A DNA stretch of 64,000 nt, from NCBI GenBank assembly GCA_973895155.1, contig OZ316897.1, positions 14,259,375 through 14,323,374 of the forward strand, in the 5' to 3' direction. Positions 13,731 through 32,712 of the stretch are shown here, piece by piece. The stretch is from Marsupella aquatica. Taxonomy: Eukaryota > Plantae > Marchantiophyta. Made by a program: the position numbers and the translations under genes. The notes under the pieces are model-generated. The model ran no database searches. It had not been told where the DNA came from and saw only the letters and a list, made by a program, of their open reading frames with translations. The number at the start of each line of letters is the position of its first letter. Position 1 is the stretch's first letter.

Positions 13731-14058
13731 ATCTTTTCTGGATGAAATCGAACAACGATCAGTGCTAATCCAACAATGATCCCGTCCGACACGATCACAC
13801 ATATATGTCAAGCCCAACGCACCTTGTGCTTCAAGGAATCCACGTTACTTGCACACAACCTGGTTAGCCACACCATAGCCACCAAGCTCATGCTCAAAGG
13901 CTCAACATTGAAAGATGAGGCCTTTGAGCCAACACAAGGGGATAACTATCCCTCACACCAACTCAAACTAAACACAAAGTGCTCATATAGCACACATTCA
14001 AAACCTCTATATCCTAGATAGTACGATATACTTTACTACCACTCTAAATGGTGTGACA
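13731..14058. repeat. Terminal repeat module B, copy 1 (328 bp)
   Basis: Matches 23058-23385 and 32385-32712. Confidence 0.9.
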
Positions 14059-14060
14059 GC

Positions 14061-14202
14061 TGTCGTGCGCATACACATCGCTACACAACATACATCGCTT
14101 GTCACACATATTCAAACATAGTCACAATCCACTAACACGAACATAAGAGAATGGAGTACAAATGGAACCAATGTCCACATGCCCAAAACCCACAATCGCC
14201 CC
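14061..14202. repeat. Module A, copy 2, joined to B1 by a GC dinucleotide
   Basis: ...gtgtgaca GC tgtcgtgcgc... Confidence 0.9.
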
Positions 14203-14369
14203 CCTAGCTGGGAGTGAGGTCCCCTAACTCTAGCTAGCCATGAGTTCTACAAGGTTAATATACACCTTTTTAGGTGCGAAGATCAGGAGGCCGGGTGCAA
14301 GTGAGCCCCATCGATCACCTACCTGCAATCTATATCTTCCACAAGAACACAAATGATAACTAGTCGGCA

Positions 14370-15623
14370 TCACCGACATTGAGGACAAAACCATGATCCA
14401 CTAGGAATCATGTGCAAGGGTGGTGTCAAACACGACATGTGCCATCCTCTAGAACACCTATCACAAATCAACATAGTAGCTGCTTCCTGAGCAGACCCAC
14501 ACAACATACACTTCAAGCTAGCACGAACATGTGCCAAGCTTGGATCCATAGTGCCATCAATGTTTGGAAGGTGACATGGTGCACAATTACGCACGTGATC
14601 CTTCCAAACCATACCATCACGCCCTTCCAACATAAGGACTCCAGAAGGCAACACTTCACGCACACGCAAGATTGTCCGCCCTGCGGTCACATCAAGCGTT
14701 GTTGGTGCTGTCTGCTGCAAATAAACATAATCGCCAGGATGAAATCTCCTAATCTTCGTGCGATAACCTCCTCCACGAATAGTAGCATATCGCAAAGTAT
14801 CACGATGCTGGGCAATAGCAAGGTTGTCAAAGGCCATGGGCATGACTCTCTCAAAAACTCGTGCCCTCTCTGAACAAACCTTTACCCAAATATCTGGATC
14901 ATCCAAATCCACAACAGTTGCAACATCACGACGAATAGCCACTGGCAAATCTGGCTCTCTACCATAGAGCAAGAAATAGGGTGAGAATGATGCAAGTGAT
15001 GCTTGTCGACTGAAACGGTAGCCCATAGCTAACCAAGGTAGTTGGAGATCCCAGTCTCCCAAATGACCAACCTGTAAGCCATACTTGCGCAATCCTCTCT
15101 TCACAATTTGTACAACTCTCTCTGCCAATCCATCTGCCTCAGGATGATCGCGAGAAGTAGTACGATGGTCAATCAGAGCTTGCTCACACAAACCCTCAAA
15201 ATCTCCACGGAATTCCGTGCCCTGATCAGTCAACACCTCAGCTGGTGCTCCAAAGTGACTGAGTACTCGATCCAGAAATGTGGTAGCCACTCCTCCACTA
15301 GCTTTATCTGGCAATGCCACTAGTTCAATCCACTTGGAGAAGTGCTCCACCATAACCAAAACATAACGGTTATGTCGTTGGGTGAGAGGCAATGGACCAG
15401 CAAAGTCCAAACTCCATCTGTACCCCAAACCCATGATTGGCAATGGATGCAACTGGGGAGTGGGAGCATTAAATGATGCCCTCACTCGATCACATACCAC
15501 ACACTTAGCTATCAGTTGCTGGACATGAGTGTGCATACCACGCCACCAATACTGTGTCTGCAGCAAACTATAAGTGCGCTTGACACCAAAATGCCCTAAC
15601 TCCTCATGCGCATGTCGCACCAA
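14370..15623 (-). CDS. Integrase (HHCC + DDE) with C-terminal PHD finger, unit 1
   Basis: HEELGH..CVVC; LDFAG..TDQG..AER; CMLC..CDRC..HMSC..CPQC (C4HC3). Confidence 0.92.
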   Translation of the reverse strand: MVRHAHEELGHFGVKRTYSLLQTQYWWRGMHTHVQQLIAKCVVCDRVRASFNAPTPQLHPLPIMGLGYRWSLDFAGPLPLTQRHNRYVLVMVEHFSKWIELVALPDKASGGVATTFLDRVLSHFGAPAEVLTDQGTEFRGDFEGLCEQALIDHRTTSRDHPEADGLAERVVQIVKRGLRKYGLQVGHLGDWDLQLPWLAMGYRFSRQASLASFSPYFLLYGREPDLPVAIRRDVATVVDLDDPDIWVKVCSERARVFERVMPMAFDNLAIAQHRDTLRYATIRGGGYRTKIRRFHPGDYVYLQQTAPTTLDVTAGRTILRVREVLPSGVLMLEGRDGMVWKDHVRNCAPCHLPNIDGTMDPSLAHVRASLKCMLCGSAQEAATMLICDRCSRGWHMSCLTPPLHMIPSGSWFCPQCR

Positions 15624-15815
15624 ATGTACTCATTGTGATGGTTTTGGTACCACCAATACCTTACCATCACGTAGTACTCTCAAAAGATGGCTTCCTTCCC
15701 ATCGAAACCTCTTGGCTCTCTGTAGAACCCTGTCACGTTCCTTGGCATCAATACTGCCAACAATAGAACCACTGCGCAGATATTCCAACACTTTCACATC
15801 ATTGTGAATATCTTG

Positions 15816-17441
15816 CTATCCAAAAGTTACCTCACCAACATCCACATCTGAAGACTCATCATCTGCTTCATCCAATGAAGTAGAGTCCACAGAACCACTG
15901 CATGCTGGAACCCAACAAAGGAAGGCAGATGCATGCCATCCTGACACCATCTCCTTATCTGACTCATCATGCCATCTGGCTCCAGTCTCATCCTCCTGAC
16001 TGGTACATGGATTGCGGCTCAACCCATCTGCATCCAAATTCACCTTTCCAGGCCTATGCACCACCTGGAAATCATACTCCTGTAACAACAATGCCCATCG
16101 TGCAAGCTTCCCTGTAAGCTTGTCAGACTCCATTAACCACTTGAGAGGCTGATGATCAGTGATCAAAGTGAAAGGATTACCAAACAAGTAACACTGGAAG
16201 TGTGCCACAGCCCACACTGCTGCCAAACACTCTTCCTCATAAGAGCTATACTTAGCCTCTACTAAATTGTTTGATCTACTGGCATATGCCAACTCATGTC
16301 CTTCATCATCTTTCTGAGTCAGCACTGCTCCAAGTCCTACTCCACTCCAATCAGTGTGTAGCTGAAATGGTCTCCCTCAAATGGGTCTTCTCAAAATAGG
16401 GGATGATGCCAATCTTTCTTTCAACTCCTGAAAGGCATGCTCTTGATCATCACCCCAAATCCATTCCTGATCCAACTTAGTGAGTATGGTCAAAGGTTTA
16501 GCAAGCTGGCTAAATCCTTTAACATACCTCCTATAGTAGCTCGCCAATCTGAAGAATGCACGAACTCTACTCACATCAGTAGGACGAGGAATCTGTGTAA
16601 TGGCCTCCACTTTAGTCTGTTGTACACCCAATCCCCCTGGGTATATAGTGTGGCCCAAATACTCAATCTGTTCTTGGAAGAACTTACAATTGCCGGGATG
16701 GAGCTTCAATCCATGTTCCTTCAATCTCTCAAACACAATCTGCAAGTGTCGTTGATGTTCTTCCACAGTAGAAGAATAAACCAAAATATCATCAATATAA
16801 CATCTGACAAAATCCAGACCTGCAAGGATTCAATCCATGACTCTCTGGAACTCAGCTGGTGCATTCTTCAATCCAAATGGTAAGAACAACCACTGATACA
16901 AACGATGCTTGCCATAAGAATCAATTCTCCAGAATGCTGTCTTGGACCTGTCAGAATGTCTGATTGGAAGCTGATGGTACCCTACCCTCAGATCCAATGA
17001 ACTAAAAACCTTTGCATGCCCCACTGCATCAAAGATCTCCTCAGGTGTGGGCATGGCATATCGATCAGATTTTGTCTGACGATTAATAGGTCGGTAATCA
17101 CCACACATACGCCTATCCGTGTAATTACCATGCACATCCTTCTTGGCTGGCATCACTGTGGCAGATGCATACTCCCCGTATGAGATCTCCACCAAACCAG
17201 CCTCCAACAAATCCTGAGTTTTGCTCTGGATCAGAGCTCTTTCCATGTCACTATAACGATATGGTCTACGAAAGATTGGCGCATCACTAGCCAATTCAAT
17301 CTGAATACCAGGGCCCTTCAATGTCCCCAAATCCTTCATGCTGAATGCAAAACAATTCCAATAACTCTTTAGGAATCGATGCATGCGATGTCTCTCCTCC
17401 CCTATCAACTTAGGACCAATCTGTGGCTCCCAACTCTCCAC
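15816..17441 (-). pseudogene. Reverse transcriptase and RNase H, unit 1
   Basis: RMCGDYRPIN, LDLRVGYHQ, LPFGLKNAPAEFQR, CYIDDIL (16782-16802), FQLHTDWS, TDHQPL, DADGLSR. Confidence 0.92.
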
Positions 17442-17663
17442 CAGATCCCTAATATCTTTTTGTAGGGTAGAAGAGATAGCCGATGATTGCTATTTAGCAG
17501 TAGATTGAGCAGTCCCTTCCTGCTCAACAATCTGTCCAGCCTTGGCCAATCCTGCCATAGGTCCATGGATTGCCTGCTCGCCCCCAGCTGTGGTCATCAT
17601 TGTCTTAGTGGACCGCAAGCTCACTAATGGACGATCAGTAACACCAGCAGAGCGCATCCGCAA

Positions 17664-18755
17664 CTATTCAGCTACTCCCAAGCTGATAATCCAAGTCAAG
17701 CAATTCAAATCCATGGCTTGACCAAGGACTTGGCGGCGTGAACTCTCTAACACCGAGGCAACTGCAGTAGTGCCTGTCAACAATCCCATAGCACGCTCTC
17801 TTTCATCAGCAGTAGGCTCCACTAATTGCTGTAGCGTTGTATCCCATACAAGTCCAGGCCCACCTGCTCTAAATGCATATGAAGCAGAATGGCTCACAAA
17901 AGTGGGTAATGCACAACGCGGACGACCAACCAAATTGACCACTGCCAATGGAGATCTGTCAGACTGGGTCACATGTTGTGCACAACGCCCTGGATCCAAA
18001 ATATCATCCACCACCAAGGATGCTGAGCGAGGAATGCTATCAAATGCTCGCTTCAACACTTCACAAGGTAACAAATTAGTCCACCACAAGCGTGGACGAT
18101 GTGCACGAGAACCCACACGTGCAGCATCCAATAATACAGCAGGTCCAATCCAAGATCTGACCTGATGTACACTAGCAACAAGTCGATGACGCTCATCACC
18201 CAATAGTGGCACATTCTCCAAAATGTAGGCAGGGGAATGTGTTTGGTGTAACTGGAGATGACGCAATACCCGTAACATCTCCCAAAACAATGCAGAGCGT
18301 GGATCATGAAGTCCATGTCCAACTCCAGCTCTTGATTGGCCTTGACATGGCCAACCAGCAATCACCAAATCAATGGGGCCAACGGGATCCAAATGATCCG
18401 CCCCCAGCAATGAAATATCAGCCGACAATGCATGCTGATAGCCACGAACAGCATCCACTGGCAACAACTGTGGATAACGGTCTACCAACATAGCCACATG
18501 ACACAATGAGACTCTCCGTGTTGTCTCATCTGTCTCCACATACAAGTATCGACGCACAGGAATTCCTGCCTGAAGAATAGCAGCCAATCCAGTGCTAATT
18601 CCACCAAATAGATCGAGCAAACAAATACCCTCTGGTGGATACTGCCATGCAATAGGAGTGGTATCCAATGGTGAAAGAGTCACTGGTCCACCTGTAGGAG
18701 ATTGCTCTGCTCCTGACTGTGGTGTAAAAGCATGACGCCATGCATCATGTACCAA
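17664..18755 (-). CDS. C5-cytosine DNA methyltransferase domain (DNMT3/DRM-like motif signature), unit 1
   Basis: Motif I DLFGGISTG, II YVETD, IV GWPCQG, VI ENV, VIII HRPRLWWTN, IX ERERAMG, X LGQAMD. Confidence 0.92.
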   Translation of the reverse strand: MVHDAWRHAFTPQSGAEQSPTGGPVTLSPLDTTPIAWQYPPEGICLLDLFGGISTGLAAILQAGIPVRRYLYVETDETTRRVSLCHVAMLVDRYPQLLPVDAVRGYQHALSADISLLGADHLDPVGPIDLVIAGWPCQGQSRAGVGHGLHDPRSALFWEMLRVLRHLQLHQTHSPAYILENVPLLGDERHRLVASVHQVRSWIGPAVLLDAARVGSRAHRPRLWWTNLLPCEVLKRAFDSIPRSASLVVDDILDPGRCAQHVTQSDRSPLAVVNLVGRPRCALPTFVSHSASYAFRAGGPGLVWDTTLQQLVEPTADERERAMGLLTGTTAVASVLESSRRQVLGQAMDLNCLTWIISLGVAE

Positions 18756-18767
18756 TTGTGCTGCCCT

Positions 18768-19820
18768 CTACGGCAAGGCTTGTGCAGTACCCCATACTGG
18801 TGGCACAACACTAGTTGGATTGGGATCATCCCAATCCAGTTTGCTCCTTCGCACCATCTGCTCCTCATGTGACTCCTCCACTGATGGAACATCTGCTGCA
18901 TGTGCATTACCCTCCATCAAATAATCAGGATCAGTGATCACACCACTGAAGGCTGCCAAAGACAATAGTGTGGGTTTAGGGCCTCCCACAGGTCCACTAA
19001 ATTGCACTGGCAACCTGCTCAATCGAGCATCTCCTGACTGCCAATCAGGTCTGTATGACACTGATTCATCCCAAAAATCAAGAATAAATCCCATGGGGTA
19101 CAACACTGTACATCCCACCAACACGTCATAGGACTCGGCCTTAGTCAAAATAGCTCGCGCCTGTATGTGGGAACTATCCTTGGTATGACCCTCCTAAATC
19201 CTCAATTCAAGTGGTCGTCTGGTGATGTGCTGTGTGGGTGTAGGTCCCCCCAATGAAGTCTGAATAGGAAAGGGACACTCGTCCAGATCATCTGGATGCA
19301 ATGCCAATCCTCGTACCGCAGACTTACCCAACATCAAGGGCTGAGCACCAGTATCCAGTAACACTCTCTCTGGCTGGTATATGGCTCCAGTAGGCCCAAC
19401 TAATCGGAAGATACCACTCCGATTATCCAATGACACAACACTAGGTTTAAACCTAGTCCTCTCAAATGCAGGGCGTGCTGGTAAATCCACCAACCTCGCT
19501 GCTGCTGCATGCCAGGTCTCGCTAGTAGCCGTAGGTGGCATGGTCTTCACAGCTTCAACACTGCAAGCTGCTTTTGCATGGGAAGCAACAACTGGAGTGT
19601 CCTCATAGAGTGTAGCTGCCAATCTGAACACTTCTGCAGGACCAACTGCCAAGTTTAGCATGTCTGTAGCTGAAAATAATGGGGTGCGCACTATGGTAGT
19701 AGCCGCCCCCAGCAGGGTACCTGTCATCCCTGCTGCATCACTACCTGATTCTGCCAACTTACCCACGCTAGGGTTTGTCTGAATCGGGTTCATAGAGGCA
19801 GTCTGAACTGTCTCTAACAA
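18768..19820 (-). pseudogene. Aspartic protease region, unit 1
   Basis: VLLDTGAQ ... YDVLVG flap and C-terminal motifs. Confidence 0.8.
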
Positions 19821-19865
19821 TGTAAAAGACTGAGGAAGCTTTGTCTGACGACGTGCATCCCCCCT

Positions 19866-21407
19866 CTATGGATCTAGGTCCACTACTGCTCCTCGGGGCT
19901 CAAGAGCTTTTGCTGCCCCACGCGTCAAAGCTGTTGATGCATCAATGTGTGCAGTGCCACACATGAATCCCATGGTGGCAAGATCTCCATCAACCCCATA
20001 AGATGTGGAAGCTCCATAGGATGTAGAAGCCCCATCACCAGAAGTAGGTCTCACCTGAGAACTAGCCATAGCAGCTAGTTGTTGCTCCAATTGAGCAATC
20101 TTAGCATCCTTAGGATCTGTGGTCACAGTAGGAGCAACCTCACCTCCTTGCCTTGCTACATGTGGCATACCTCGGCCACGATCACCACCTCTACCTCCTC
20201 TTCCCTGATCATGTGTGCGTTGTCCTCCTCTCCGTAACTCGGGATGGAGTGAGAAACACCTATCCTTGGTGTGTCCAGGAGCTCCACAATGATCACACTG
20301 CCGCTGATCAGGTGCTGAGGCCCCTCCTGACCCTCTAGGATCAGGGCAATACCGCTGCGCATGATCCCCACCACAGGTCCAACATCCTGATTGCTGTCCA
20401 GCATAGGAAGGCACAGGTCTCTGACTGGTAGACTCTCGTGCAGTAGGCTTCTCCCTCTGGCTCTTCCGTGCAACAGGCTGTGGTGTGGATGTAGATGCAG
20501 CCTTGGGTGCTTCCTTGGCAAATCCGGAAGTCACCACCTTCTCATTCACCATATTGAGCTCAATTCACTCAGAAAGTGTAAAAACAACTGCCAATGTGGG
20601 ATCTGCATCCCTAAGCAGAGTGACATCTCTCACTCTACGTCGCAATTCTCTATCCAGAATTGCATACCAAAACTGGACTGCTTGAGCCTCTGTCACTCCC
20701 TTGGTGACAGTGATCAATCTGCGCATACGAGTGTATGCCTCACGTAGACTCTCTCCAGTCTTGCGCTGAAACTCCTGGAGACCCTTCAACTTATCAGTCC
20801 TCACACCCTGATAGTTCTGCTTTAATACTTCAAAGAACTCCACCACAGGGTTAAATGTTGGCGTGACTCCAACCCCTGTCACAATCGCACTGGTAGGAGT
20901 AGCGGTGGATGTTGTTGGAGTGGTACTGGTAGATGGTGTGCCACTCTGGCTAGTGCTGCTAGAAGAAGCAACAACTATAGCAATGGGTTGGGCAGCCGCT
21001 CTAGTGCCATAGGTGATGGACACATAATTAGGTGACCAATGCTGCCTCCATGCCTCAATCTCAACCAAATGAGCCTTCTGAAACTCATGGTAATCATCCA
21101 TGGGTGGCCCCTCCAAATGCTGAAATAATCCCTTCCATGCCATGAAAGGGGTAAACAACGTGGCATTACGTAATGACTGCATGTCGCACCACGTATCAAA
21201 CTCCTGGATGAAGTCATCCAGATCAATCGTGCCAACTGCACCAGAGTATCGTCGTGGGCCCTTTGTAGCCCCGTACATCTCTTCCATATCCCACAACAAA
21301 GGTGCAATCACCTGATGACAAGGAGAATTGGTCACAGAGTCCTCGTCAGAATCACTATCTGAAGCTGCACTTGCAACTGCTATCAATGTTGTTGGCCGAA
21401 ATGACAC
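19866..21407 (-). pseudogene. Gag with two zinc knuckles, unit 1
   Basis: FQRKTGESLREAYTRM (MHR-like); CWTCGGDHAQRYC and CDHCGAPGHTKDRC. Confidence 0.85.
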
Positions 21408-21722
21408 CCCACTTCGAGTGAAACCGGTCCTCTGTCCCTCGGACAGTTCCGTAGCACCCGAAGAATCCGTGATGACAAATCTGCCCTAAATCATCACCAT
21501 CACCTTCATAATAGGCTTCACAATGCCCCAAGGTTGTAGCTAAGAATCCATGCAAAATTAATCCAATCTATGCATCTAGATGGATTCAGAAGTATAAAAA
21601 ACCTCCAAATAGCATCTAATTTGGCCCAAAACAGGTCTCTAGACAAACTAATAAGTGTATAAAGGCCCCTGGCCCTTTTAACTTAGACAACAAGTTGTGA
21701 AAACTTGTGTGTACACTACATG

Positions 21723-21782
21723 CCATAAGAACTCCATGGTTAAGCACGCGCAAGAGGAATAGCTTTGGGATGGGTGACCTCC
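21723..21782 (+). promoter_or_regulatory. 5S rRNA-derived internal control region (A-box to C-box), antisense to the element, unit 1
   Basis: CCATAAGAACTCCATGGTTAAGCACGC...GGATGGGTGACCTCC versus plant 5S CCATCAGAACTCCGCAGTTAAGCGTGC...GGATGGGTGACCTCC; about 44/61 identical by hand alignment to a recalled plant 5S sequence. Confidence 0.85.
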
Positions 21783-22033
21783 CCCCTTGGAGTTATGCAC
21801 CAACTTAGGCACTCCAAACCAACCAATTGTCAACTACTCCTCACGTACCAACAAGCTACCTTGCGGCCTGCTCCGGTCTGGCTCCTGTTCCGTCCTCACG
21901 CCCCTCGTCACGAGTCGCCTTGAAACGCGAGATGAGCCTAAGGGAGCCCTTCACACCCGCCACACTTCGCTACGTCGGGATGAACCTCCAATTCAAATCC
22001 ATTCAATAGTCATCCGGACGCCCGGTCCACAAG

Positions 22034-22474
22034 TTGGAGTGGGATGATCCCAGTCCAAGTCCTTCACATCCTCTACACAGGTGAAGTCGCCAAGATACAG
22101 TTGGATTGGGTTGATCCTAATCCAAATCCACTTCAAGGTCCAGATGAGGTCTCTGGACACGCCAACATACAGTTGGATTGAGATGATCCCAATCCAATTT
22201 CACCTTCAAGTCCAAATGGGGTCCGAAGTTACCAATGTATAGTTGGATTGGGATGATCCTAGTCCAAATCCAACTTCGAGTCAAAATGCGGTCTCAAGAG
22301 ACAACCCACAATTGGACTCGGATGATCCCAATCCAAATCCAACTTTGAGTCAAAATGAAGTCTCAAGAGACAACCCACAATTGGACTTGGATGATCCCAA
22401 TCCAAATCCAACTTTGAGTCAAAATGCGGTCTCAAGAGACAACCCACAATTGGACTCAGATGATCCTAGTCCAA
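22034..22474. repeat. Array of seven 25-bp palindromes TTGGATTGGGAT-G-ATCCCAATCCAA, period 67-72 bp, unit 1
   Basis: Copies at 22034, 22101, 22173, 22243, 22312, 22381 and 22450. Confidence 0.9.
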
Positions 22475-23057
22475 AACAAGGCGCGCCACAAAACACGCCG
22501 CAATTCTCGGACCAAAACACTGTTCAACAATATTGTCGTTTTCCTTGTGCCCTAGGTCGCCGCCGCACCTCGTCGCAACGCGGACTCCATCGTGACATCG
22601 ACGACACAATTCACCAACATTTGATTGTCACTTTCTTCGTAAAAGTGTACTATCCATCAACGAATCTCAAATCCGCAATAGCCTTTGCGATGCTGCAACG
22701 CAATCGATAAGGACTAGAACTCCAAAAACACAATGTAGCAACTACCACTTGAGGCGCCTTCTGATCTTCGATCAGTCCCTCATTGCCATAGCTTCGAGAA
22801 GCTCCAAATGTCAATCCGATAATCAACTCCAGAGAGAACTTCAATGAACAAACTATCAGAGAGCTTCAAACAACACCACGCTGTACTCTTAGAGCAATCA
22901 ATAGCTCACAATCTCCAATCTACCAACGGCTGATCTGACTTGAGCTACCACAAGTCAACCAGCAAGATCCCAACAATCCAAGCTACCATGGATCAACTCT
23001 GCAATACAGCAAGCTTCGAAACAGCTTCGAATCAACCTGCAGTGATCTTTCAATGTA

Positions 23058-23529
23058 ATCTTTTCTGGATGAAATCGAACAACGATCAGTGCTAATCCAA
23101 CAATGATCCCGTCCGACACGATCACACATATATGTCAAGCCCAACGCACCTTGTGCTTCAAGGAATCCACGTTACTTGCACACAACCTGGTTAGCCACAC
23201 CATAGCCACCAAGCTCATGCTCAAAGGCTCAACATTGAAAGATGAGGCCTTTGAGCCAACACAAGGGGATAACTATCCCTCACACCAACTCAAACTAAAC
23301 ACAAAGTGCTCATATAGCACACATTCAAAACCTCTATATCCTAGATAGTACGATATACTTTACTACCACTCTAAATGGTGTGACAGCTGTCGTGCGCATA
23401 CACATCGCTACACAACATACATCGCTTGTCACACATATTCAAACATAGTCACAATCCACTAACACGAACATAAGAGAATGGAGTACAAATGGAACCAATG
23501 TCCACATGCCCAAAACCCACAATCGCCCC
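23058..23529. repeat. Module B2 + GC + module A3 (junction between the tandem units)
   Basis: Same as 13731-14202 at +9327. Confidence 0.9.
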
Positions 23530-23696
23530 CCTAGCTGGGAGTGAGGTCCCCTAACTCTAGCTAGCCATGAGTTCTACAAGGTTAATATACACCTTTTTAG
23601 GTGCGAAGATCAGGAGGCCGGGTGCAAGTGAGCCCCATCGATCACCTACCTGCAATCTATATCTTCCACAAGAACACAAATGATAACTAGTCGGCA

Positions 23697-24950
23697 TCAC
23701 CGACATTGAGGACAAAACCATGATCCACTAGGAATCATGTGCAAGGGTGGTGTCAAACACGACATGTGCCATCCTCTAGAACACCTATCACAAATCAACA
23801 TAGTAGCTGCTTCCTGAGCAGACCCACACAACATACACTTCAAGCTAGCACGAACATGTGCCAAGCTTGGATCCACAGTGCCATCAATGTTTGGAAGGTG
23901 ACATGGTGCACAATTACGCACGTGATCCTTCCAAACCATACCATCACGCCCTTCCAACATAAGGACTCCAGAAGGCAACACTTCACGCACACGCAAGATT
24001 GTCCGCCCTGCGGTCACATCAAGCGTTGTTGGTGCTGTCTGCTGCAAATAAACATAATCGCCAGGATGAAATCTCCTAATCTTCGTGCGATAACCTCCTC
24101 CACGAATAGTAGCATATCGCAAAGTATCACGATGCTGGGCAATAGCAAGGTTGTCAAAGGCCATGGGCATGACTCTCTCAAAAACTCGTGCCCTCTCTGA
24201 ACAAACCTTTACCCAAATATCTGGATCATCCAAATCCACAACAGTTGCAACATCACGACGAATAGCCACTGGCAAATCTGGCTCTCTACCATAGAGCAAG
24301 AAATAGGGTGAGAATGATGCAAGTGATGCTTGTCGACTGAAACGGTAGCCCATAGCTAACCAAGGTAGTTGGAGATCCCAGTCTCCCAAATGACCAACCT
24401 GTAAGCCATACTTGCGCAATCCTCTCTTCACAATTTGTACAACTCTCTCTGCCAATCCATCTGCCTCAGGATGATCGCGAGAAGTAGTACGATGGTCAAT
24501 CAGAGCTTGCTCACACAAACCCTCAAAATCTCCACGGAATTCCGTGCCCTGATCAGTCAACACCTCAGCTGGTGCTCCAAAGTGACTGAGTACTCGATCC
24601 AGAAATGTGGTAGCCACTCCTCCACTAGCTTTATCTGGCAATGCCACTAGTTCAATCCACTTGGAGAAGTGCTCCACCATAACCAAAACATAACGGTTAT
24701 GTCGTTGGGTGAGAGGCAATGGACCAGCAAAGTCCAAACTCCATCTGTACCCCAAACCCATGATTGGCAATGGATGCAACTGGGGAGTGGGAGCATTAAA
24801 TGATGCCCTCACTCGATCACATACCACACACTTAGCTATCAGTTGCTGGACATGAGTGTGCATACCACGCCACCAATACTGTGTCTGCAGCAAACTATAA
24901 GTGCGCTTGACACCAAAATGCCCTAACTCCTCATGCGCATGTCGCACCAA
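23697..24950 (-). CDS. Integrase with C-terminal PHD finger, unit 2
   Basis: As unit 1. Confidence 0.92.
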   Translation of the reverse strand: MVRHAHEELGHFGVKRTYSLLQTQYWWRGMHTHVQQLIAKCVVCDRVRASFNAPTPQLHPLPIMGLGYRWSLDFAGPLPLTQRHNRYVLVMVEHFSKWIELVALPDKASGGVATTFLDRVLSHFGAPAEVLTDQGTEFRGDFEGLCEQALIDHRTTSRDHPEADGLAERVVQIVKRGLRKYGLQVGHLGDWDLQLPWLAMGYRFSRQASLASFSPYFLLYGREPDLPVAIRRDVATVVDLDDPDIWVKVCSERARVFERVMPMAFDNLAIAQHRDTLRYATIRGGGYRTKIRRFHPGDYVYLQQTAPTTLDVTAGRTILRVREVLPSGVLMLEGRDGMVWKDHVRNCAPCHLPNIDGTVDPSLAHVRASLKCMLCGSAQEAATMLICDRCSRGWHMSCLTPPLHMIPSGSWFCPQCR

Positions 24951-26990
24951 ATGTACTCATTGTGATGGTTTTGGTACCACCAATACCTTACCATCACGTA
25001 GTACTCTCAAAAGATGGCTTCCTTCCCATCGAAACCTCTTGGCTCTCTGTAGAACCCTGTCACGTTCCTTGGCATCAATACTGCCAACAATAGAACCACT
25101 GCGCAGATATTCCAACACTTTCACATCATTGTGAATATCTTGCTATCCAAAAGTTACCTCACCAACATCCACATCTGAAGACTCATCATCTGCTTCATCC
25201 AATGAAGTAGAGTCCACAGAACCACTGCATGCTGGAACCCAACAAAGGAAGGCAGATGCATGCCATCCTGACACCATCTCCTTATCTGACTCATCATGCC
25301 ATCTGGCTCCAGTCTCATCCTCCTGACTGGTACATGGATTGCGGCTCAACCCATCTGCATCCAAATTCACCTTTCCAGGCCTATGCACCACCTGGAAATC
25401 ATACTCCTGTAACAACAATGCCCATCGTGCAAGCTTCCCTGTAAGCTTGTCAGACTCCATTAACCACTTGAGAGGCTGATGATCAGTGATCAAAGTGAAA
25501 GGATTACCAAACAAGTAACACTGGAAGTGTGCCACAGCCCACACTGCTGCCAAACACTCTTCCTCATAAGAGCTATACTTAGCCTCTACTAAATTGTTTG
25601 ATCTACTGGCATATGCCAACTCATGTCCTTCATCATCTTTCTGAGTCAGCACTGCTCCAAGTCCTACTCCACTCCAATCAGTGTGTAGCTGAAATGGTCT
25701 CCCTCAAATGGGTCTTCTCAAAATAGGGGATGATGCCAATCTTTCTTTCAACTCCTGAAAGGCATGCTCTTGATCATCACCCCAAATCCATTCCTGATCC
25801 AACTTAGTGAGTATGGTCAAAGGTTTAGCAAGCTGGCTAAATCCTTTAACATACCTCCTATAGTAGCTCGCCAATCTGAAGAATGCACGAACTCTACTCA
25901 CATCAGTAGGACGAGGAATCTGTGTAATGGCCTCCACTTTAGTCTGTTGTACACCCAATCCCCCTGGGTATATAGTGTGGCCCAAATACTCAATCTGTTC
26001 TTGGAAGAACTTACAATTGCCGGGATGGAGCTTCAATCCATGTTCCTTCAATCTCTCAAACACAATCTGCAAGTGTCGTTGATGTTCTTCCACAGTAGAA
26101 GAATAAACCAAAATATCATCAATATAACATCTGACAAAATCCAGACCTGCAAGGATTCAATCCATGACTCTCTGGAACTCAGCTGGTGCATTCTTCAATC
26201 CAAATGGTAAGAACAACCACTGATACAAACGATGCTTGCCATAAGAATCAATTCTCCAGAATGCTGTCTTGGACCTGTCAGAATGTCTGATTGGAAGCTG
26301 ATGGTACCCTACCCTCAGATCCAATGAACTAAAAACCTTTGCATGCCCCACTGCATCAAAGATCTCCTCAGGTGTGGGCATGGCATATCGATCAGATTTT
26401 GTCTGACGATTAATAGGTCGGTAATCACCACACATACGCCTATCCGTGTAATTACCATGCACATCCTTCTTGGCTGGCATCACTGTGGCAGATGCATACT
26501 CCCCGTATGAGATCTCCACCAAACCAGCCTCCAACAAATCCTGAGTTTTGCTCTGGATCAGAGCTCTTTCCATGTCACTATAACGATATGGTCTACGAAA
26601 GATTGGCGCATCACTAGCCAATTCAATCTGAATACCAGGGCCCTTCAATGTCCCCAAATCCTTCATGCTGAATGCAAAACAATTCCAATAACTCTTTAGG
26701 AATCGATGCATGCGATGTCTCTCCTCCCCTATCAACTTAGGACCAATCTGTGGCTCCCAACTCTCCACCAGATCCCTAATATCTTTTTGTAGGGTAGAAG
26801 AGATAGCCGATGATTGCTATTTAGCAGTAGATTGAGCAGTCCCTTCCTGCTCAACAATCTGTCCAGCCTTGGCCAATCCTGCCATAGGTCCATGGATTGC
26901 CTGCTCGCCCCCAGCTGTGGTCATCATTGTCTTAGTGGACCGCAAGCTCACTAATGGACGATCAGTAACACCAGCAGAGCGCATCCGCAA

Positions 26991-28082
26991 CTATTCAGCT
27001 ACTCCCAAGCTGATAATCCAAGTCAAGCAATTCAAATCCATGGCTTGACCAAGGACTTGGCGGCGTGAACTCTCTAACACCGAGGCAACTGCAGTAGTGC
27101 CTGTCAACAATCCCATAGCACGCTCTCTTTCATCAGCAGTAGGCTCCACTAATTGCTGTAGCGTTGTATCCCATACAAGTCCAGGCCCACCTGCTCTAAA
27201 TGCATATGAAGCAGAATGGCTCACAAAAGTGGGTAATGCACAACGCGGACGACCAACCAAATTGACCACTGCCAATGGAGATCTGTCAGACTGGGTCACA
27301 TGTTGTGCACAACGCCCTGGATCCAAAATATCATCCACCACCAAGGATGCTGAGCGAGGAATGCTATCAAATGCTCGCTTCAACACTTCACAAGGTAACA
27401 AATTAGTCCACCACAAGCGTGGACGATGTGCACGAGAACCCACACGTGCAGCATCCAATAATACAGCAGGTCCAATCCAAGATCTGACCTGATGTACACT
27501 AGCAACAAGTCGATGACGCTCATCACCCAATAGTGGCACATTCTCCAAAATGTAGGCAGGGGAATGTGTTTGGTGTAACTGGAGATGACGCAATACCCGT
27601 AACATCTCCCAAAACAATGCAGAGCGTGGATCATGAAGTCCATGTCCAACTCCAGCTCTTGATTGGCCTTGACATGGCCAACCAGCAATCACCAAATCAA
27701 TGGGGCCAACGGGATCCAAATGATCCGCCCCCAGCAATGAAATATCAGCCGACAATGCATGCTGATAGCCACGAACAGCATCCACTGGCAACAACTGTGG
27801 ATAACGGTCTACCAACATAGCCACATGACACAATGAGACTCTCCGTGTTGTCTCATCTGTCTCCACATACAAGTATCGACGCACAGGAATTCCTGCCTGA
27901 AGAATAGCAGCCAATCCAGTGCTAATTCCACCAAATAGATCGAGCAAACAAATACCCTCTGGTGGATACTGCCATGCAATAGGAGTGGTATCCAATGGTG
28001 AAAGAGTCACTGGTCCACCTGTAAGAGATTGCTCTGCTCCTGACTGTGGTGTAAAAGCATGACGCCATGCATCATGTACCAA
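26991..28082 (-). CDS. C5-cytosine DNA methyltransferase domain, unit 2
   Basis: As unit 1; PCQ, ENV and RxR motifs intact. Confidence 0.92.
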   Translation of the reverse strand: MVHDAWRHAFTPQSGAEQSLTGGPVTLSPLDTTPIAWQYPPEGICLLDLFGGISTGLAAILQAGIPVRRYLYVETDETTRRVSLCHVAMLVDRYPQLLPVDAVRGYQHALSADISLLGADHLDPVGPIDLVIAGWPCQGQSRAGVGHGLHDPRSALFWEMLRVLRHLQLHQTHSPAYILENVPLLGDERHRLVASVHQVRSWIGPAVLLDAARVGSRAHRPRLWWTNLLPCEVLKRAFDSIPRSASLVVDDILDPGRCAQHVTQSDRSPLAVVNLVGRPRCALPTFVSHSASYAFRAGGPGLVWDTTLQQLVEPTADERERAMGLLTGTTAVASVLESSRRQVLGQAMDLNCLTWIISLGVAE

Positions 28083-31049
28083 TTGTGCTGCCCTCTACGG
28101 CAAGGCTTGTGCAGTACCCCATACTGGTGGCACAACACTAGTTGGATTGGGATCATCCCAATCCAGTTTGCTCCTTCGCACCATCTGCTCCTCATGTGAC
28201 TCCTCCACTGATGGAACATCTGCTGCATGTGCATTACCCTCCATCAAATAATCAGGATCAGTGATCACACCACTGAAGGCTGCCAAAGACAATAGTGTGG
28301 GTTTAGGGCCTCCCACAGGTCCACTAAATTGCACTGGCAACCTGCTCAATCGAGCATCTCCTGACTGCCAATCAGGTCTGTATGACACTGATTCATCCCA
28401 AAAATCAAGAATAAATCCCATGGGGTACAACACTGTACATCCCACCAACACGTCATAGGACTCGGCCTTAGTCAAAATAGCTCGCGCCTGTATGTGGGAG
28501 CTATCCTTGGTATGACCCTCCTAAATCCTCAATTCAAGTGGTCGTCTGGTGATGTGCTGTGTGGGTGTAGGTCCCCCCAATGAAGTCTGAATAGGAAAGG
28601 GACACTCGTCCAGATCATCTGGATGCAATGCCAATCCTCGTACCGCAGACTTACCCAACATCAAGGGCTGAGCACCAGTATCCAGTAACACTCTCTCTGG
28701 CTGGTATATGGCTCCAGTAGGCCCAACTAATCGGAAGATACCACTCCGATTATCCAATGACACAACACTAGGTTTAAACTTAGTCCTCTCAAATGCAGGG
28801 CGTGCTGGTAAATCCACCAACCTCGCTGCTGCTGCATGCCAGGTCTCGCTAGTAGCCGTAGGTGGCATGGTCTTCACAGCTTCAACACTGCAAGCTGCTT
28901 TTGCATGGGAAGCAACAACTGGAGTGTCCTCATAGAGTGTAGCTGCCAATCTGAACACTTCTGCAGGACCAACTGCCAAGTTTAGCATGTCTGTAGCTGA
29001 AAATAATGGGGTGCGCACTATGGTAGTAGCCGCCCCCAGCAGGGTACCTGTCATCCCTGCTGCATCACTACCTGATTCTGCCAACTTACCCACGCTAGGG
29101 TTTGTCTGAATCGGGTTCATAGAGGCAGTCTGAACTGTCTCTAACAATGTAAAAGACTGAGGAAGCTTTGTCTGACGACGTGCATCCCCCCTCTATGGAT
29201 CTAGGTCCACTACTGCTCCTCGGGGCTCAAGAGCTTTTGCTGCCCCACGCGTCAAAGCTGTTGATGCATCAATGTGTGCAGTGCCACACATGAATCCCAT
29301 GGTGGCAAGATCTTCATCAACCCCATAAGATGTGGAAGCTCCATAGGATGTAGAAGCCCCATCACCAGAAGTAGGTCTCACCTGAGAACTAGCCATAGCA
29401 GCTAGTTGTTGCTCCAATTGAGCAATCTTAGCATCCTTAGGATCTGTGGTCACAGTAGGAGCAACCTCACCTCCTTGCCTTGCTACATGTGGCATACCTC
29501 GGCCACGATCACCACCTCTACCTCCTCTTCCCTGATCATGTGTGCGTTGTCCTCCTCTCCGTAACTCGGGATGGAGTGAGAAACACCTATCCTTGGTGTG
29601 TCCAGGAGCTCCACAATGATCACACTGCCGCTGATCAGGTGCTGAGGCCCCTCCTGACCCTCTAGGATCAGGGCAATACCGCTGCGCATGATCCCCACCA
29701 CAGGTCCAACATCCTGATTGCTGTCCAGCATAGGAAGGCACAGGTCTCTGACTGGTAGACTCTCGTGCAGTAGGCTTCTCCCTCTGGCTCTTCCGTGCAA
29801 CAGGCTGTGGTGTGGATGTAGATGCAGCCTTGGGTGCTTCCTTGGCAAATCCGGAAGTCACCACCTTCTCATTCACCATATTGAGCTCAATTCACTCAGA
29901 AAGTGTAAAAACAACTGCCAATGTGGGATCTGCATCCCTAAGCAGAGTGACATCTCTCACTCTACGTCGCAATTCTCTATCCAGAATTGCATACCAAAAC
30001 TGGACTGCTTGAGCCTCTGTCACTCCCTTGGTGACAGTGATCAATCTGCGCATACGAGTGTATGCCTCACGTAGACTCTCTCCAGTCTTGCGCTGAAACT
30101 CCTGGAGACCCTTCAACTTATCAGTCCTCACACCCTGATAGTTCTGCTTTAATACTTCAAAGAACTCCACCACAGGGTTAAATGTTGGCGTGACTCCAAC
30201 CCCTGTCACAATCGCACTGGTAGGAGTAGCGGTGGATGTTGTTGGAGTGGTACTGGTAGATGGTGTGCCACTCTGGCTAGTGCTGCTAGAAGAAGCAACA
30301 ACTATAGCAATGGGTTGGGCAGCCGCTCTAGTGCCATAGGTGATGGACACATAATTAGGTGACCAATGCTGCCTCCATGCCTCAATCTCAACCAAATGAG
30401 CCTTCTGAAACTCATGGTAATCATCCATGGGTGGCCCCTCCAAATGCTGAAATAATCCCTTCCATGCCATGAAAGGGGTAAACAACGTGGCATTACGTAA
30501 TGACTGCATGTCGCACCACGTATCAAACTCCTGGATGAAGTCATCCAGATCAATCGTGCCAACTGCACCAGAGTATCGTCGTGGGCCCTTTGTAGCCCCG
30601 TACATCTCTTCCATATCCCACAACAAAGGTGCAATCACCTGATGACAAGGAGAATTGGTCACAGAGTCCTCGTCAGAATCACTATCTGAAGCTGCACTTG
30701 CAACTGCTATCAATGTTGTTGGCCGAAATGACACCCCACTTCGAGTGAAACCGGTCCTCTGTCCCTCGGACAGTTCCGTAGCACCCGAAGAATCCGTGAT
30801 GACAAATCTGCCCTAAATCATCACCATCACCTTCATAATAGGCTTCACAATGCCCCAAGGTTGTAGCTAAGAATCCATGCAAAATTAATCCAATCTATGC
30901 ATCTAGATGGATTCAGAAGTATAAAAAACCTCCAAATAGCATCTAATTTGGCCCAAAACAGGTCTCTAGACAAACTAATAAGTGTATAAAGGCCCCTGGC
31001 CCTTTTAACTTAGACAACAAGTTGTGAAAACTTGTGTGTACACTACATG

Positions 31050-31109
31050 CCATAAGAACTCCATGGTTAAGCACGCGCAAGAGGAATAGCTTTGGGATGG
31101 GTGACCTCC
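31050..31109 (+). promoter_or_regulatory. 5S rRNA-derived internal control region, unit 2
   Basis: Identical to 21723-21782. Confidence 0.85.
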
Positions 31110-31360
31110 CCCCTTGGAGTTATGCACCAACTTAGGCACTCCAAACCAACCAATTGTCAACTACTCCTCACGTACCAACAAGCTACCTTGCGGCCTGCTC
31201 CGGTCTGGCTCCTGTTCCGTCCTCACGCCCCTCGTCACGAGTCGCCTTGAAACGCGAGATGAGCCTAAGGGAGCCCTTCACACCCGCCACACTTCGCTAC
31301 GTCGGGATGAACCTCCAATTCAAATCCATTCAATAGTCATCCGGACGCCCGGTCCACAAG

Positions 31361-31801
31361 TTGGAGTGGGATGATCCCAGTCCAAGTCCTTCACATCCTC
31401 TACACAGGTGAAGTCGCCAAGATACAGTTGGATTGGGTTGATCCTAATCCAAATCCACTTCAAGGTCCAGATGAGGTCTCTGGACACGCCAACATACAGT
31501 TGGATTGAGATGATCCCAATCCAATTTCACCTTCAAGTCCAAATGGGGTCCGAAGTTACCAATGTATAGTTGGATTGGGATGATCCTAGTCCAAATCCAA
31601 CTTCGAGTCAAAATGCGGTCTCAAGAGACAACCCACAATTGGACTCGGATGATCCCAATCCAAATCCAACTTTGAGTCAAAATGAAGTCTCAAGAGACAA
31701 CCCACAATTGGACTTGGATGATCCCAATCCAAATCCAACTTTGAGTCAAAATGCGGTCTCAAGAGACAACCCACAATTGGACTCAGATGATCCTAGTCCA
31801 A
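31361..31801. repeat. Seven-palindrome array, unit 2
   Basis: As 22034-22474. Confidence 0.9.
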
Positions 31802-32384
31802 AACAAGGCGCGCCACAAAACACGCCGCAATTCTCGGACCAAAACACTGTTCAACAATATTGTCGTTTTCCTTGTGCCCTAGGTCGCCGCCGCACCTCGT
31901 CGCAACGCGGACTCCATCGTGACATCGACGACACAATTCACCAACATTTGATTGTCACTTTCTTCGTAAAAGTGTACTATCCATCAACGAATCTCAAATC
32001 CGCAATAGCCTTTGCGATGCTGCAACGCAATCGATAAGGACTAGAACTCCAAAAACACAATGTAGCAACTACCACTTGAGGCGCCTTCTGATCTTCGATC
32101 AGTCCCTCATTGCCATAGCTTCGAGAAGCTCCAAATGTCAATCCGATAATCAACTCCAGAGAGAACTTCAATGAACAAACTATCAGAGAGCTTCAAACAA
32201 CACCACGCTGTACTCTTAGAGCAATCAATAGCTCACAATCTCCAATCTACCAACGGCTGATCTGACTTGAGCTACCACAAGTCAACCAGCAAGATCCCAA
32301 CAATCCAAGCTACCATGGATCAACTCTGCAATACAGCAAGCTTCGAAACAGCTTCGAATCAACCTGCAGTGATCTTTCAATGTA

Positions 32385-32712
32385 ATCTTTTCTGGATGAA
32401 ATCGAACAACGATCAGTGCTAATCCAACAACGATCCCGTCCGACACGATCACACATATATGTCAAGCCCAACGCACCTTGTGCTTCAAGGAATCCACGTT
32501 ACTTGCACACAACCTGGTCAGCCACACCATAGCCACCAAGCTCATGCTCAAAGGCTCAACATTGAAAGATGAGGCCTTTGAGCCAACACAAGGGGATAAC
32601 TATCCCTCACACCAACTCAAACTAAACACAAAGTGCTCATATAGCACACATTCAAAACCTCTATATCCTAGATAGTACGATATACTTTACTACCACTCTA
32701 AATGGTGTGACA
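32385..32712. repeat. Module B3 (element 5' end)
   Basis: Matches B1 and B2 except C at 32431 and 32519; followed by TSD AGTC. Confidence 0.9.

Follow-up and report, generated by a model that had tools for sequence, protein, structure and literature searches.

The leader of a DNA methyltransferase (DNMT)-coding Gypsy retroelement in the liverwort Marsupella aquatica carries a piece of a 5S rRNA gene that points away from gag, and the question raised by this locus is whether the piece is a working RNA polymerase III (Pol III) promoter, a binding site for Pol III factors or a relic. The window, i.e. the whole stretch of DNA that was analysed, was 64,000 nt long. From sequence comparison, we put the chances at about even that the cassette is a promoter-only 5S remnant, captured long ago by a bryophyte DNMT-Gypsy lineage and held antisense in the leader as a working type-1 Pol III promoter.

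The window contained two tandem units of one Gypsy retroelement on the - strand, each 9327 bp long and 99.93% identical to one another, and a 328-bp repeat both bounded and separated the two units. Read on the - strand down to 14370, the domain order was gag, protease, DNMT, reverse transcriptase (RT), RNase H and integrase-PHD, with Pfam matches in the order PF13650, PF00145, PF00078, PF17917, PF17921, PF00665 and PF00628. The host element thus had gag, protease, RT, RNase H and integrase in the order of a Ty3/Gypsy element, with a C5-DNMT in Pol. The aspartic protease match (PF13650) was weak, the C5 DNA methyltransferase match (PF00145) lay within Pol, and the integrase was accompanied by an H2C2 zinc finger and a C-terminal PHD finger. 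The reading frame of the element was interrupted several times. Because pol was broken identically in both units, the duplication of the unit was recent and occurred at the DNA level. Homologues of the gag protein carried names from Marchantia polymorpha, Sphagnum and Calypogeia. The integrase (14370-15623, - strand) terminated in the PHD finger (PF00628), at a place where many plant Gypsy elements have a chromodomain.

The leader, taken from the 328-bp repeat to the gag ORF, ran from 23057 down to 21408 and was 1.65 kb long. No target-site duplication was found around the tandem array, no recognisable primer binding site was found next to the 328-bp repeat in the window, and neither a purine-rich tract nor a tRNA-type primer site was seen at the usual places of the window units. 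Since no target-site duplication or primer binding site was seen, the true LTR end is uncertain and the 328-bp repeat may not be the whole LTR; the word leader is used here with this caveat. The repeat begins with TGTCAC, and at the inner junctions (window 13731-32712) GACAGC was followed directly by TGTCAC.

The sequence-only reading of this locus had described a box A and a perfect box C of the 5S promoter on the + strand, pointing away from gag, and all of these were found in place (Table 1). The cassette lay on the + strand, opposite to gag, and occurred once per unit, 1.26 kb inside the 328-bp repeat and with no adjacent T-run. In the 5S register, GAACTCC was located at +41, GTTAAGC at +51 and GGATGGG at +80; compared with a genuine 5S gene (L081, described below), the last of these was closer to box A by 1 nt. 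By chance, only 0.01 matches to GAACTCC-N3-GTTAAGC were expected per window, and the probability of TATAAA falling in a 7-nt slot at the observed distance was about 0.002 in this window. In Arabidopsis, 5S genes require the internal promoter together with a TATA-like motif 28 bp upstream (PMC5887818). At the level of sequence, the cassette had a box C and a TATA-like motif about 28 bp upstream, as expected of a plant type-1 promoter, and overall it looks like a complete promoter of this type, with TATA box, C/A at -1/+1, box A core, intermediate element and box C. The two tandem copies showed 0 differences across 21600-22600; because they are identical, and pol is broken in both, the window's own copies are uninformative on selection.

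Table 1. Positions of the features of the element and its cassette (window coordinates unless a locus is named), with identities to the L081 5S gene by segment
Feature	Position	Strand	Remark
gag ORF of the host element	20565..21407	-	several frame breaks in the element
328-bp terminal repeat (LTR-like)	23058..23385	-	other copies 13731-14058, 32385-32712
TATAAA, TATA-like box	21658..21663	+	at -31 to -26 relative to the predicted start; inside the 10-mer GTGTATAAAG
Predicted transcription start, A after C	21689	+	deduced by placing boxes A and C in the register of a real 5S gene
5S rRNA-derived stretch	about 21712..21800	+	~+24 to +112 of the 5S gene; 1-nt and 7-nt deletions
Box A-like GGTTAAGCACGC	21738..21749	+	core GTTAAGC intact, 3' half diverged
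Intermediate-element-like GGAATAG	21756..21762	+	identical at the same positions of the L081 5S gene
Box C GGATGGGTGACC	21768..21779	+	
Box C with flanks TGGGATGGGTGACCTCCC	21766..21783	+	18/18 nt identical to the L081 5S gene; 12 nt identical in L076
Second, identical cassette copy in the upstream tandem unit (+9327)	30982..31125	+	
Seven 25-nt palindromes, 69-bp tandem array	22034..22474		downstream of the cassette on +; sense leader on -
First TTTT downstream of the predicted start; may be a weak terminator for Pol III	22539..22542	+	851-854 nt downstream
Identity to L081, 5S +1 to +22			9/22
Identity to L081, 5S +23 to +49			19/27
Identity to L081, box A			8/15
Identity to L081, intermediate element			4/6
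Identity to L081, box C			17/18
Identity to L081, 5S +98 to +119			9/22
Abundant repeat of at least 700 bp	L012 6160-6880; L034 2328-3034, 9323-10048; L044 1273-1988; L043/L069 about 1645-2390; others		

The reference 5S gene, L081 1871-1989 (- strand), was found by a pattern scan of genome contigs; it scored 109 bits with Rfam RF00001 and was followed by a T-run terminator. In a global alignment of the cassette to this gene, z was 8.5 and 0/2000 shuffles scored as high; the homology covered positions +24 to +97 or so, interrupted by one gap of 1 nt, and the spacing from box A to box C was 1 nt shorter in the cassette than in the real gene. The proposed 5S derivation of the cassette was thus borne out, with z = 8.5 and 17/18 identities over box C. 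The covariance model gave another answer: RF00001 (gathering threshold 38 bits) returned no 5S match on the window, and even at E <= 10 none was obtained in 1.3 kb nor in 201 bases around the cassette, so that the check with Infernal and RF00001 proposed in the sequence-only reading came out negative. The Rfam 5S model also gave no 5S match on five related loci, and the only Rfam matches from these cuts were weak, generic miRNA-like matches on the palindromes. The L081 gene itself was of the green-lineage type and was located on a 3.4-kb contig (DASVQI010000013.1) filed under a Pyrinomonadaceae bacterium MAG; the contig is very likely eukaryotic contamination of a bacterial bin.

A 5S rRNA gene is about 120 nt long, with paired ends that form helix I and an immediate T-rich terminator; in the cassette, the first TTTT was located about 850 nt downstream. 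The possibility that the cassette is a 5S rRNA gene was rejected because RF00001 was negative, the first 22 bases and the 3' end were not 5S-like, and there was no terminator. Judged by the alignment, what is kept is the internal control region with its near flanks, and what is lost is the paired ends (helix I) and the terminator of 5S RNA, as would be expected if the promoter alone matters.

The + strand was free of TTTT from 21680 to 22538. The long TTTT-free run that had been taken to define an RNA of some 850 nt is therefore real, but a run of such length is expected from base composition (P about 0.2 at window composition), and runs of 1-2 kb were common on the + strand. In L076, the one related locus with a cassette, the first TTTT was located 864 nt past the predicted start (P about 0.07); in cassette-less relatives, the same stretch had 0-3 T4 runs. 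With P about 0.2 in the window, about 0.07 in L076 and 0-3 T4 runs in cassette-less loci, no clear avoidance of T-runs was seen across relatives, where it had been suggested that such avoidance be sought, and T-run avoidance was rejected as a sign of a long Pol III unit. Beyond 22539, the + strand had its next TTTT at 23061-23064, 3-6 nt inside the end of the 328-bp repeat; this position may be due to chance at one T4 per about 130 nt on the + strand.

Related elements were collected as 80 loci (L001-L080) from JGI metagenome contigs (Ga0116226-31, Ga0209208, Ga0209611), and the organisms behind them are probably bryophytes. Their gag proteins were 50-65% identical to that of the window, and DNMT was at the same distance from gag in 42 related loci, with the same domain order. 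The leaders of the metagenome loci were 80-85% identical to each other and unalignable with the leader of the window. Taken with the protein matches named from Marchantia, Sphagnum and Calypogeia, this family shows a wide distribution of the DNMT-Gypsy lineage among bryophytes. No LTR pairs or primer binding site were found in the related loci, and no gag relatives and no cassette pattern were found in viral contigs.

The cassette was rare among these relatives. A box C within one mismatch was absent from the scanned related loci, and the cassette profile search matched the window's two copies and one locus, L076, only; the cassette was thus present in 1 of about 60 related metagenome loci that spanned the site. 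The gag of L076 was 52% identical to that of the window, and the rest of its leader was unalignable. The L076 cassette lay in the leader and antisense to gag; its TATA box was located upstream of gag at a distance of 720 nt. Identical islands stood in register in the two cassettes, namely GTGTATAAAG (the TATA 10-mer), GTGTACA (+21 to +27), TTAAGC, GAATAG, TGGGATGGGTGA and TTGGAGT.ATG; TATA and box C were 113 nt apart in either cassette, with diverged sequence separating the islands. C/A at -1/+1 was also common to both. From -40 to +28, which is outside the classical control region, 33/68 ungapped identities were counted between window and L076, a score reached by 2/11304 offsets, counted in L076 only. 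Conservation of the A and C boxes across relatives, another check that had been proposed, was therefore seen in part: the blocks were kept in register in L076 and were absent from about 60 other loci.

In both cassettes, a 7-nt deletion followed box C when compared with the real 5S gene. This shared deletion points to one capture, and the comparison suggests that the capture predated the split of the two element lineages. The blocks appear to be under selection in this comparison with one distant relative, L076; since these blocks have been retained there, the cassette is probably in use. GAATAG/GGAATAG and TGGGATGGG had been considered as further shared derived states of the two cassettes and were dropped, since the real 5S gene L081 has them. 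A moss-type repeat with GCTTTGGGATGGG, present in L034, L044, L012, L050 and L052, was considered as a decayed 5S module and was rejected with z of about 0 against the real 5S gene.

How the cassette came to be in L076 and not in the other copies was also considered. In the leader tree, L076 was placed among unresolved early branches, and loss in the other copies and gain of a segment in L076 are both possible. At L076 3622-4197, a 577-bp stretch, which no other copy of the metagenome family had, replaced about 10 bp of some 60 other copies, with one same junction. The stretch was not flanked by a duplication, a second copy of it was not found in 0.5 Mb, and the cassette was located at its gag-distal end.

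If the cassette works as a promoter, TFIIIA would bind box C, the intermediate element and box A, and TFIIIC and TFIIIB would then join, TBP occupying the TATA box at about -28. Pol III would start near 21689 and transcribe away from gag into the leader, and the RNA could be up to about 850 nt long if the first T4 terminates. We infer factor binding, initiation, RNA length and RNA role from the arrangement of the blocks. That both TATA box and start context were retained speaks for initiation, and not for factor binding alone. Such an RNA would always be perfectly complementary to the 5' leader of its own element, whatever the leader sequence, and most likely it would act by complementarity, as a regulator, a copy-number brake or a small-RNA precursor, rather than by the way it folds. 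No sequence was conserved around the first T4 between window and L076. A role that depends on complementarity alone would fit, because no conserved sequence lies downstream and an antisense RNA is complementary by construction. About 50 relatives had multiplied without the cassette; it is therefore dispensable for transposition, and its role would be accessory, regulatory or restraining. Against a working promoter stands box A, which was identical to the real gene at 8/15 positions, and two separate captures, from bryophyte 5S genes that were alike in their upstream regions, could likewise account for the conserved blocks.

The seven palindromes downstream of the cassette had been read as seven stem-loops in the predicted + strand RNA. 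The palindromes are present, spaced 67-72 nt apart, but no strand-specific RNA signature was detected, and no palindromes were found in the leaders of the relatives. Pairing amounted to 72 Watson-Crick pairs, 3 G-U pairs and 9 mismatches on the + strand and to 72, 4 and 8, respectively, on the - strand. Among the seven palindromes, neither a strand bias of G-U versus C-A nor compensatory changes were observed; the variation was at arm positions 6, 8 and 9 and was uncompensated. The whole 854-nt + strand folded better than shuffles (z = -5.4), a value that is not strand-specific because any array of similar palindromes gives it on either strand. Since there was no strand bias and no compensation, and relatives lack them, the palindromes are tied to the predicted + strand transcript by position alone. 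The pattern looks more like tandem-repeat drift or variation of protein half-sites than like a conserved RNA hairpin, and the palindromes may as well serve as sites in the DNA or as signals within the sense genomic RNA. Their origin as amplified copies of box C was rejected, as they shared only an 8-mer with it, which was not above shuffles.

A binding site for TFIIIA, TFIIIC or TFIIIB would call for the same blocks as a promoter, and the conservation of these blocks would also fit a cassette that makes hardly any productive RNA, or none, and serves to form a chromatin boundary or a nucleosome-free anchor. Sites for Pol III factors are established as insulators in yeast and mammals. The lack of conserved sequence downstream of the cassette between window and L076 and the lack of a terminator directly after the 5S part are in line with such a role, as is the fact that the element has its own DNMT. 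However, the TATA box and C/A at -1/+1 were kept at the right distance, which speaks for accurate initiation and would be needless for a mere boundary. We consider such a boundary, which would shield the Pol II promoter of the element or limit the spread of methylation, unlikely.

The cassette might also be a neutral relic, that is, a piece of a 5S gene or transcript acquired by recombination or template switching, in which case the likeness to L076 would reflect the slow decay of two captures whose source 5S genes were very similar. The negative Rfam search, the roughly 60 related loci that multiplied without a cassette, the T4-free run explicable by composition and the occurrence of GGAATAG and TGGGATGGG in the real 5S gene L081 would all be compatible with this. 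By contrast, the decay was uneven, with promoter blocks intact and the sequence between them randomised. The TATA 10-mer, which is outside the 5S transcript, was identical at the same distance in L076; further, the 7-nt deletion was common to both cassettes, and both lineages had the cassette at the same antisense position in the leader. On this balance, a relic is improbable, to about the degree of a boundary.

Far less probable is a function of the sense strand, in which the genomic RNA, through its complement of 5S positions 24-112 or so, would bind the 5S rRNA of the cell and use this, for example, in packaging, tethering or priming. The perfect complementarity to real 5S over 18 nt at box C, and the lack of a recognisable primer binding site by the 328-bp repeat, are in its favour. 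However, the best-kept block besides box C was the TATA box, which is not in 5S rRNA, the complementarity was split into islands of 6-18 nt, and conservation was confined to promoter blocks. Moreover, the site is 1.26 kb from the terminal repeat, and the paired part of 5S lacks its 3' end, so that it could not prime. Least probable, and hardly to be expected, is that the antisense leader RNA serves as a self-encoded primer of minus-strand DNA synthesis, replacing a tRNA primer binding site, or guides the element's own DNMT to copies of the element, the idea of a primer substitute being weakened by the roughly 50 relatives that multiplied without the cassette; if true, the retrotransposon would supply its own Pol III-transcribed RNA cofactor (primer or DNMT guide).

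The reading as a working antisense promoter was compared with known systems. In yeast, Ty1 antisense RNAs limit copy number; they are Pol II products that start inside gag. As proposed here, they are element-encoded RNAs antisense to the 5' part of the genomic RNA, and they provide a plausible functional analogue; unlike them, the proposed promoter here is a captured Pol III type-1 promoter and is located in the leader.

The closest structural parallel is Cassandra, a group of TRIMs in which, as here, an LTR-type retroelement captured the 5S internal control region. In Cassandra, about 70 nt comprising box A, intermediate element and box C are kept and the rest varies (PMC10853983). Its elements are 565-860 bp long, so that the unit of about 850 nt predicted here would be at the upper end of that range (PMC10886601). 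According to Kojima (2024), the Cassandra transcript begins in the 5S of the 5' LTR and ends in the 5S of the 3' LTR, and autonomous partners of Cassandra are expected to use Pol II (PMC10886601). Cassandra is non-autonomous and has the 5S sequence in both LTRs, with a terminator, where it drives the transcription of the element itself (PMC10886601). By contrast, the host here is a gag-pol-DNMT Gypsy with a unit of 9327 bp, and its cassette is single, located in the leader 1.26 kb from the terminal repeat (the true LTR end being uncertain), directed against the element and not followed by a terminator. The host element therefore does not have the features that define Cassandra/TRIMp3, i.e. a non-coding length below 1 kb and 5S in both LTRs, in the element's own orientation and with a terminator. 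Cassandra has been reported from ferns and angiosperms, and not from bryophytes (PMC10946416).

Ajax, a nemertean TRIM, and the 5S SINEs (SINE3/AmnSINE1, OS, MEG and Ped-1) resemble the cassette in that only the promoter part of 5S is present and in that function was inferred from sequence conservation. Unlike the host element, they are short, non-autonomous and animal, and their own RNA starts at the 5S part. A 2024 review stated that no 5S-derived SINEs are known in plants, and its table listed 5S promoters only in animal SINEs, Cassandra and Ajax, all of them non-autonomous (PMC10946416). On the side of the host, KnitGypsy-Dnmt3 of Klebsormidium nitens is likewise described as a Ty3/Gypsy element with a C5 DNMT domain in its polyprotein, and in the parts of that source consulted no Pol III or 5S module was mentioned (PMC5890265).

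In the literature search, no 5S promoter was found described for an element of autonomous type, for a leader position, for the antisense orientation or for bryophytes. This agreed with the earlier statement that no case was known in the leader of a DNMT-coding Gypsy. The cassette is a variant of Cassandra-type 5S-promoter capture for which no published description was found. The published elements with 5S promoters (Cassandra, Ajax and 5S SINEs) are short and non-autonomous and make their own RNA; here, the element is a coding Gypsy and the promoter is reversed. If the cassette fires, a retrotransposon would recruit Pol III for an antisense RNA against its own leader, which would bear on self-regulation and regulation of elements in early land plants and on the use of methylation by DNMT elements. 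For annotation, the locus is a warning that a 5S-like match in a bryophyte genome may come from the leader of a retroelement.

Many of the metagenome elements were interrupted or flanked by an abundant repeat of at least 700 bp (Table 1), which was not 5S-like and occurred in both orientations.
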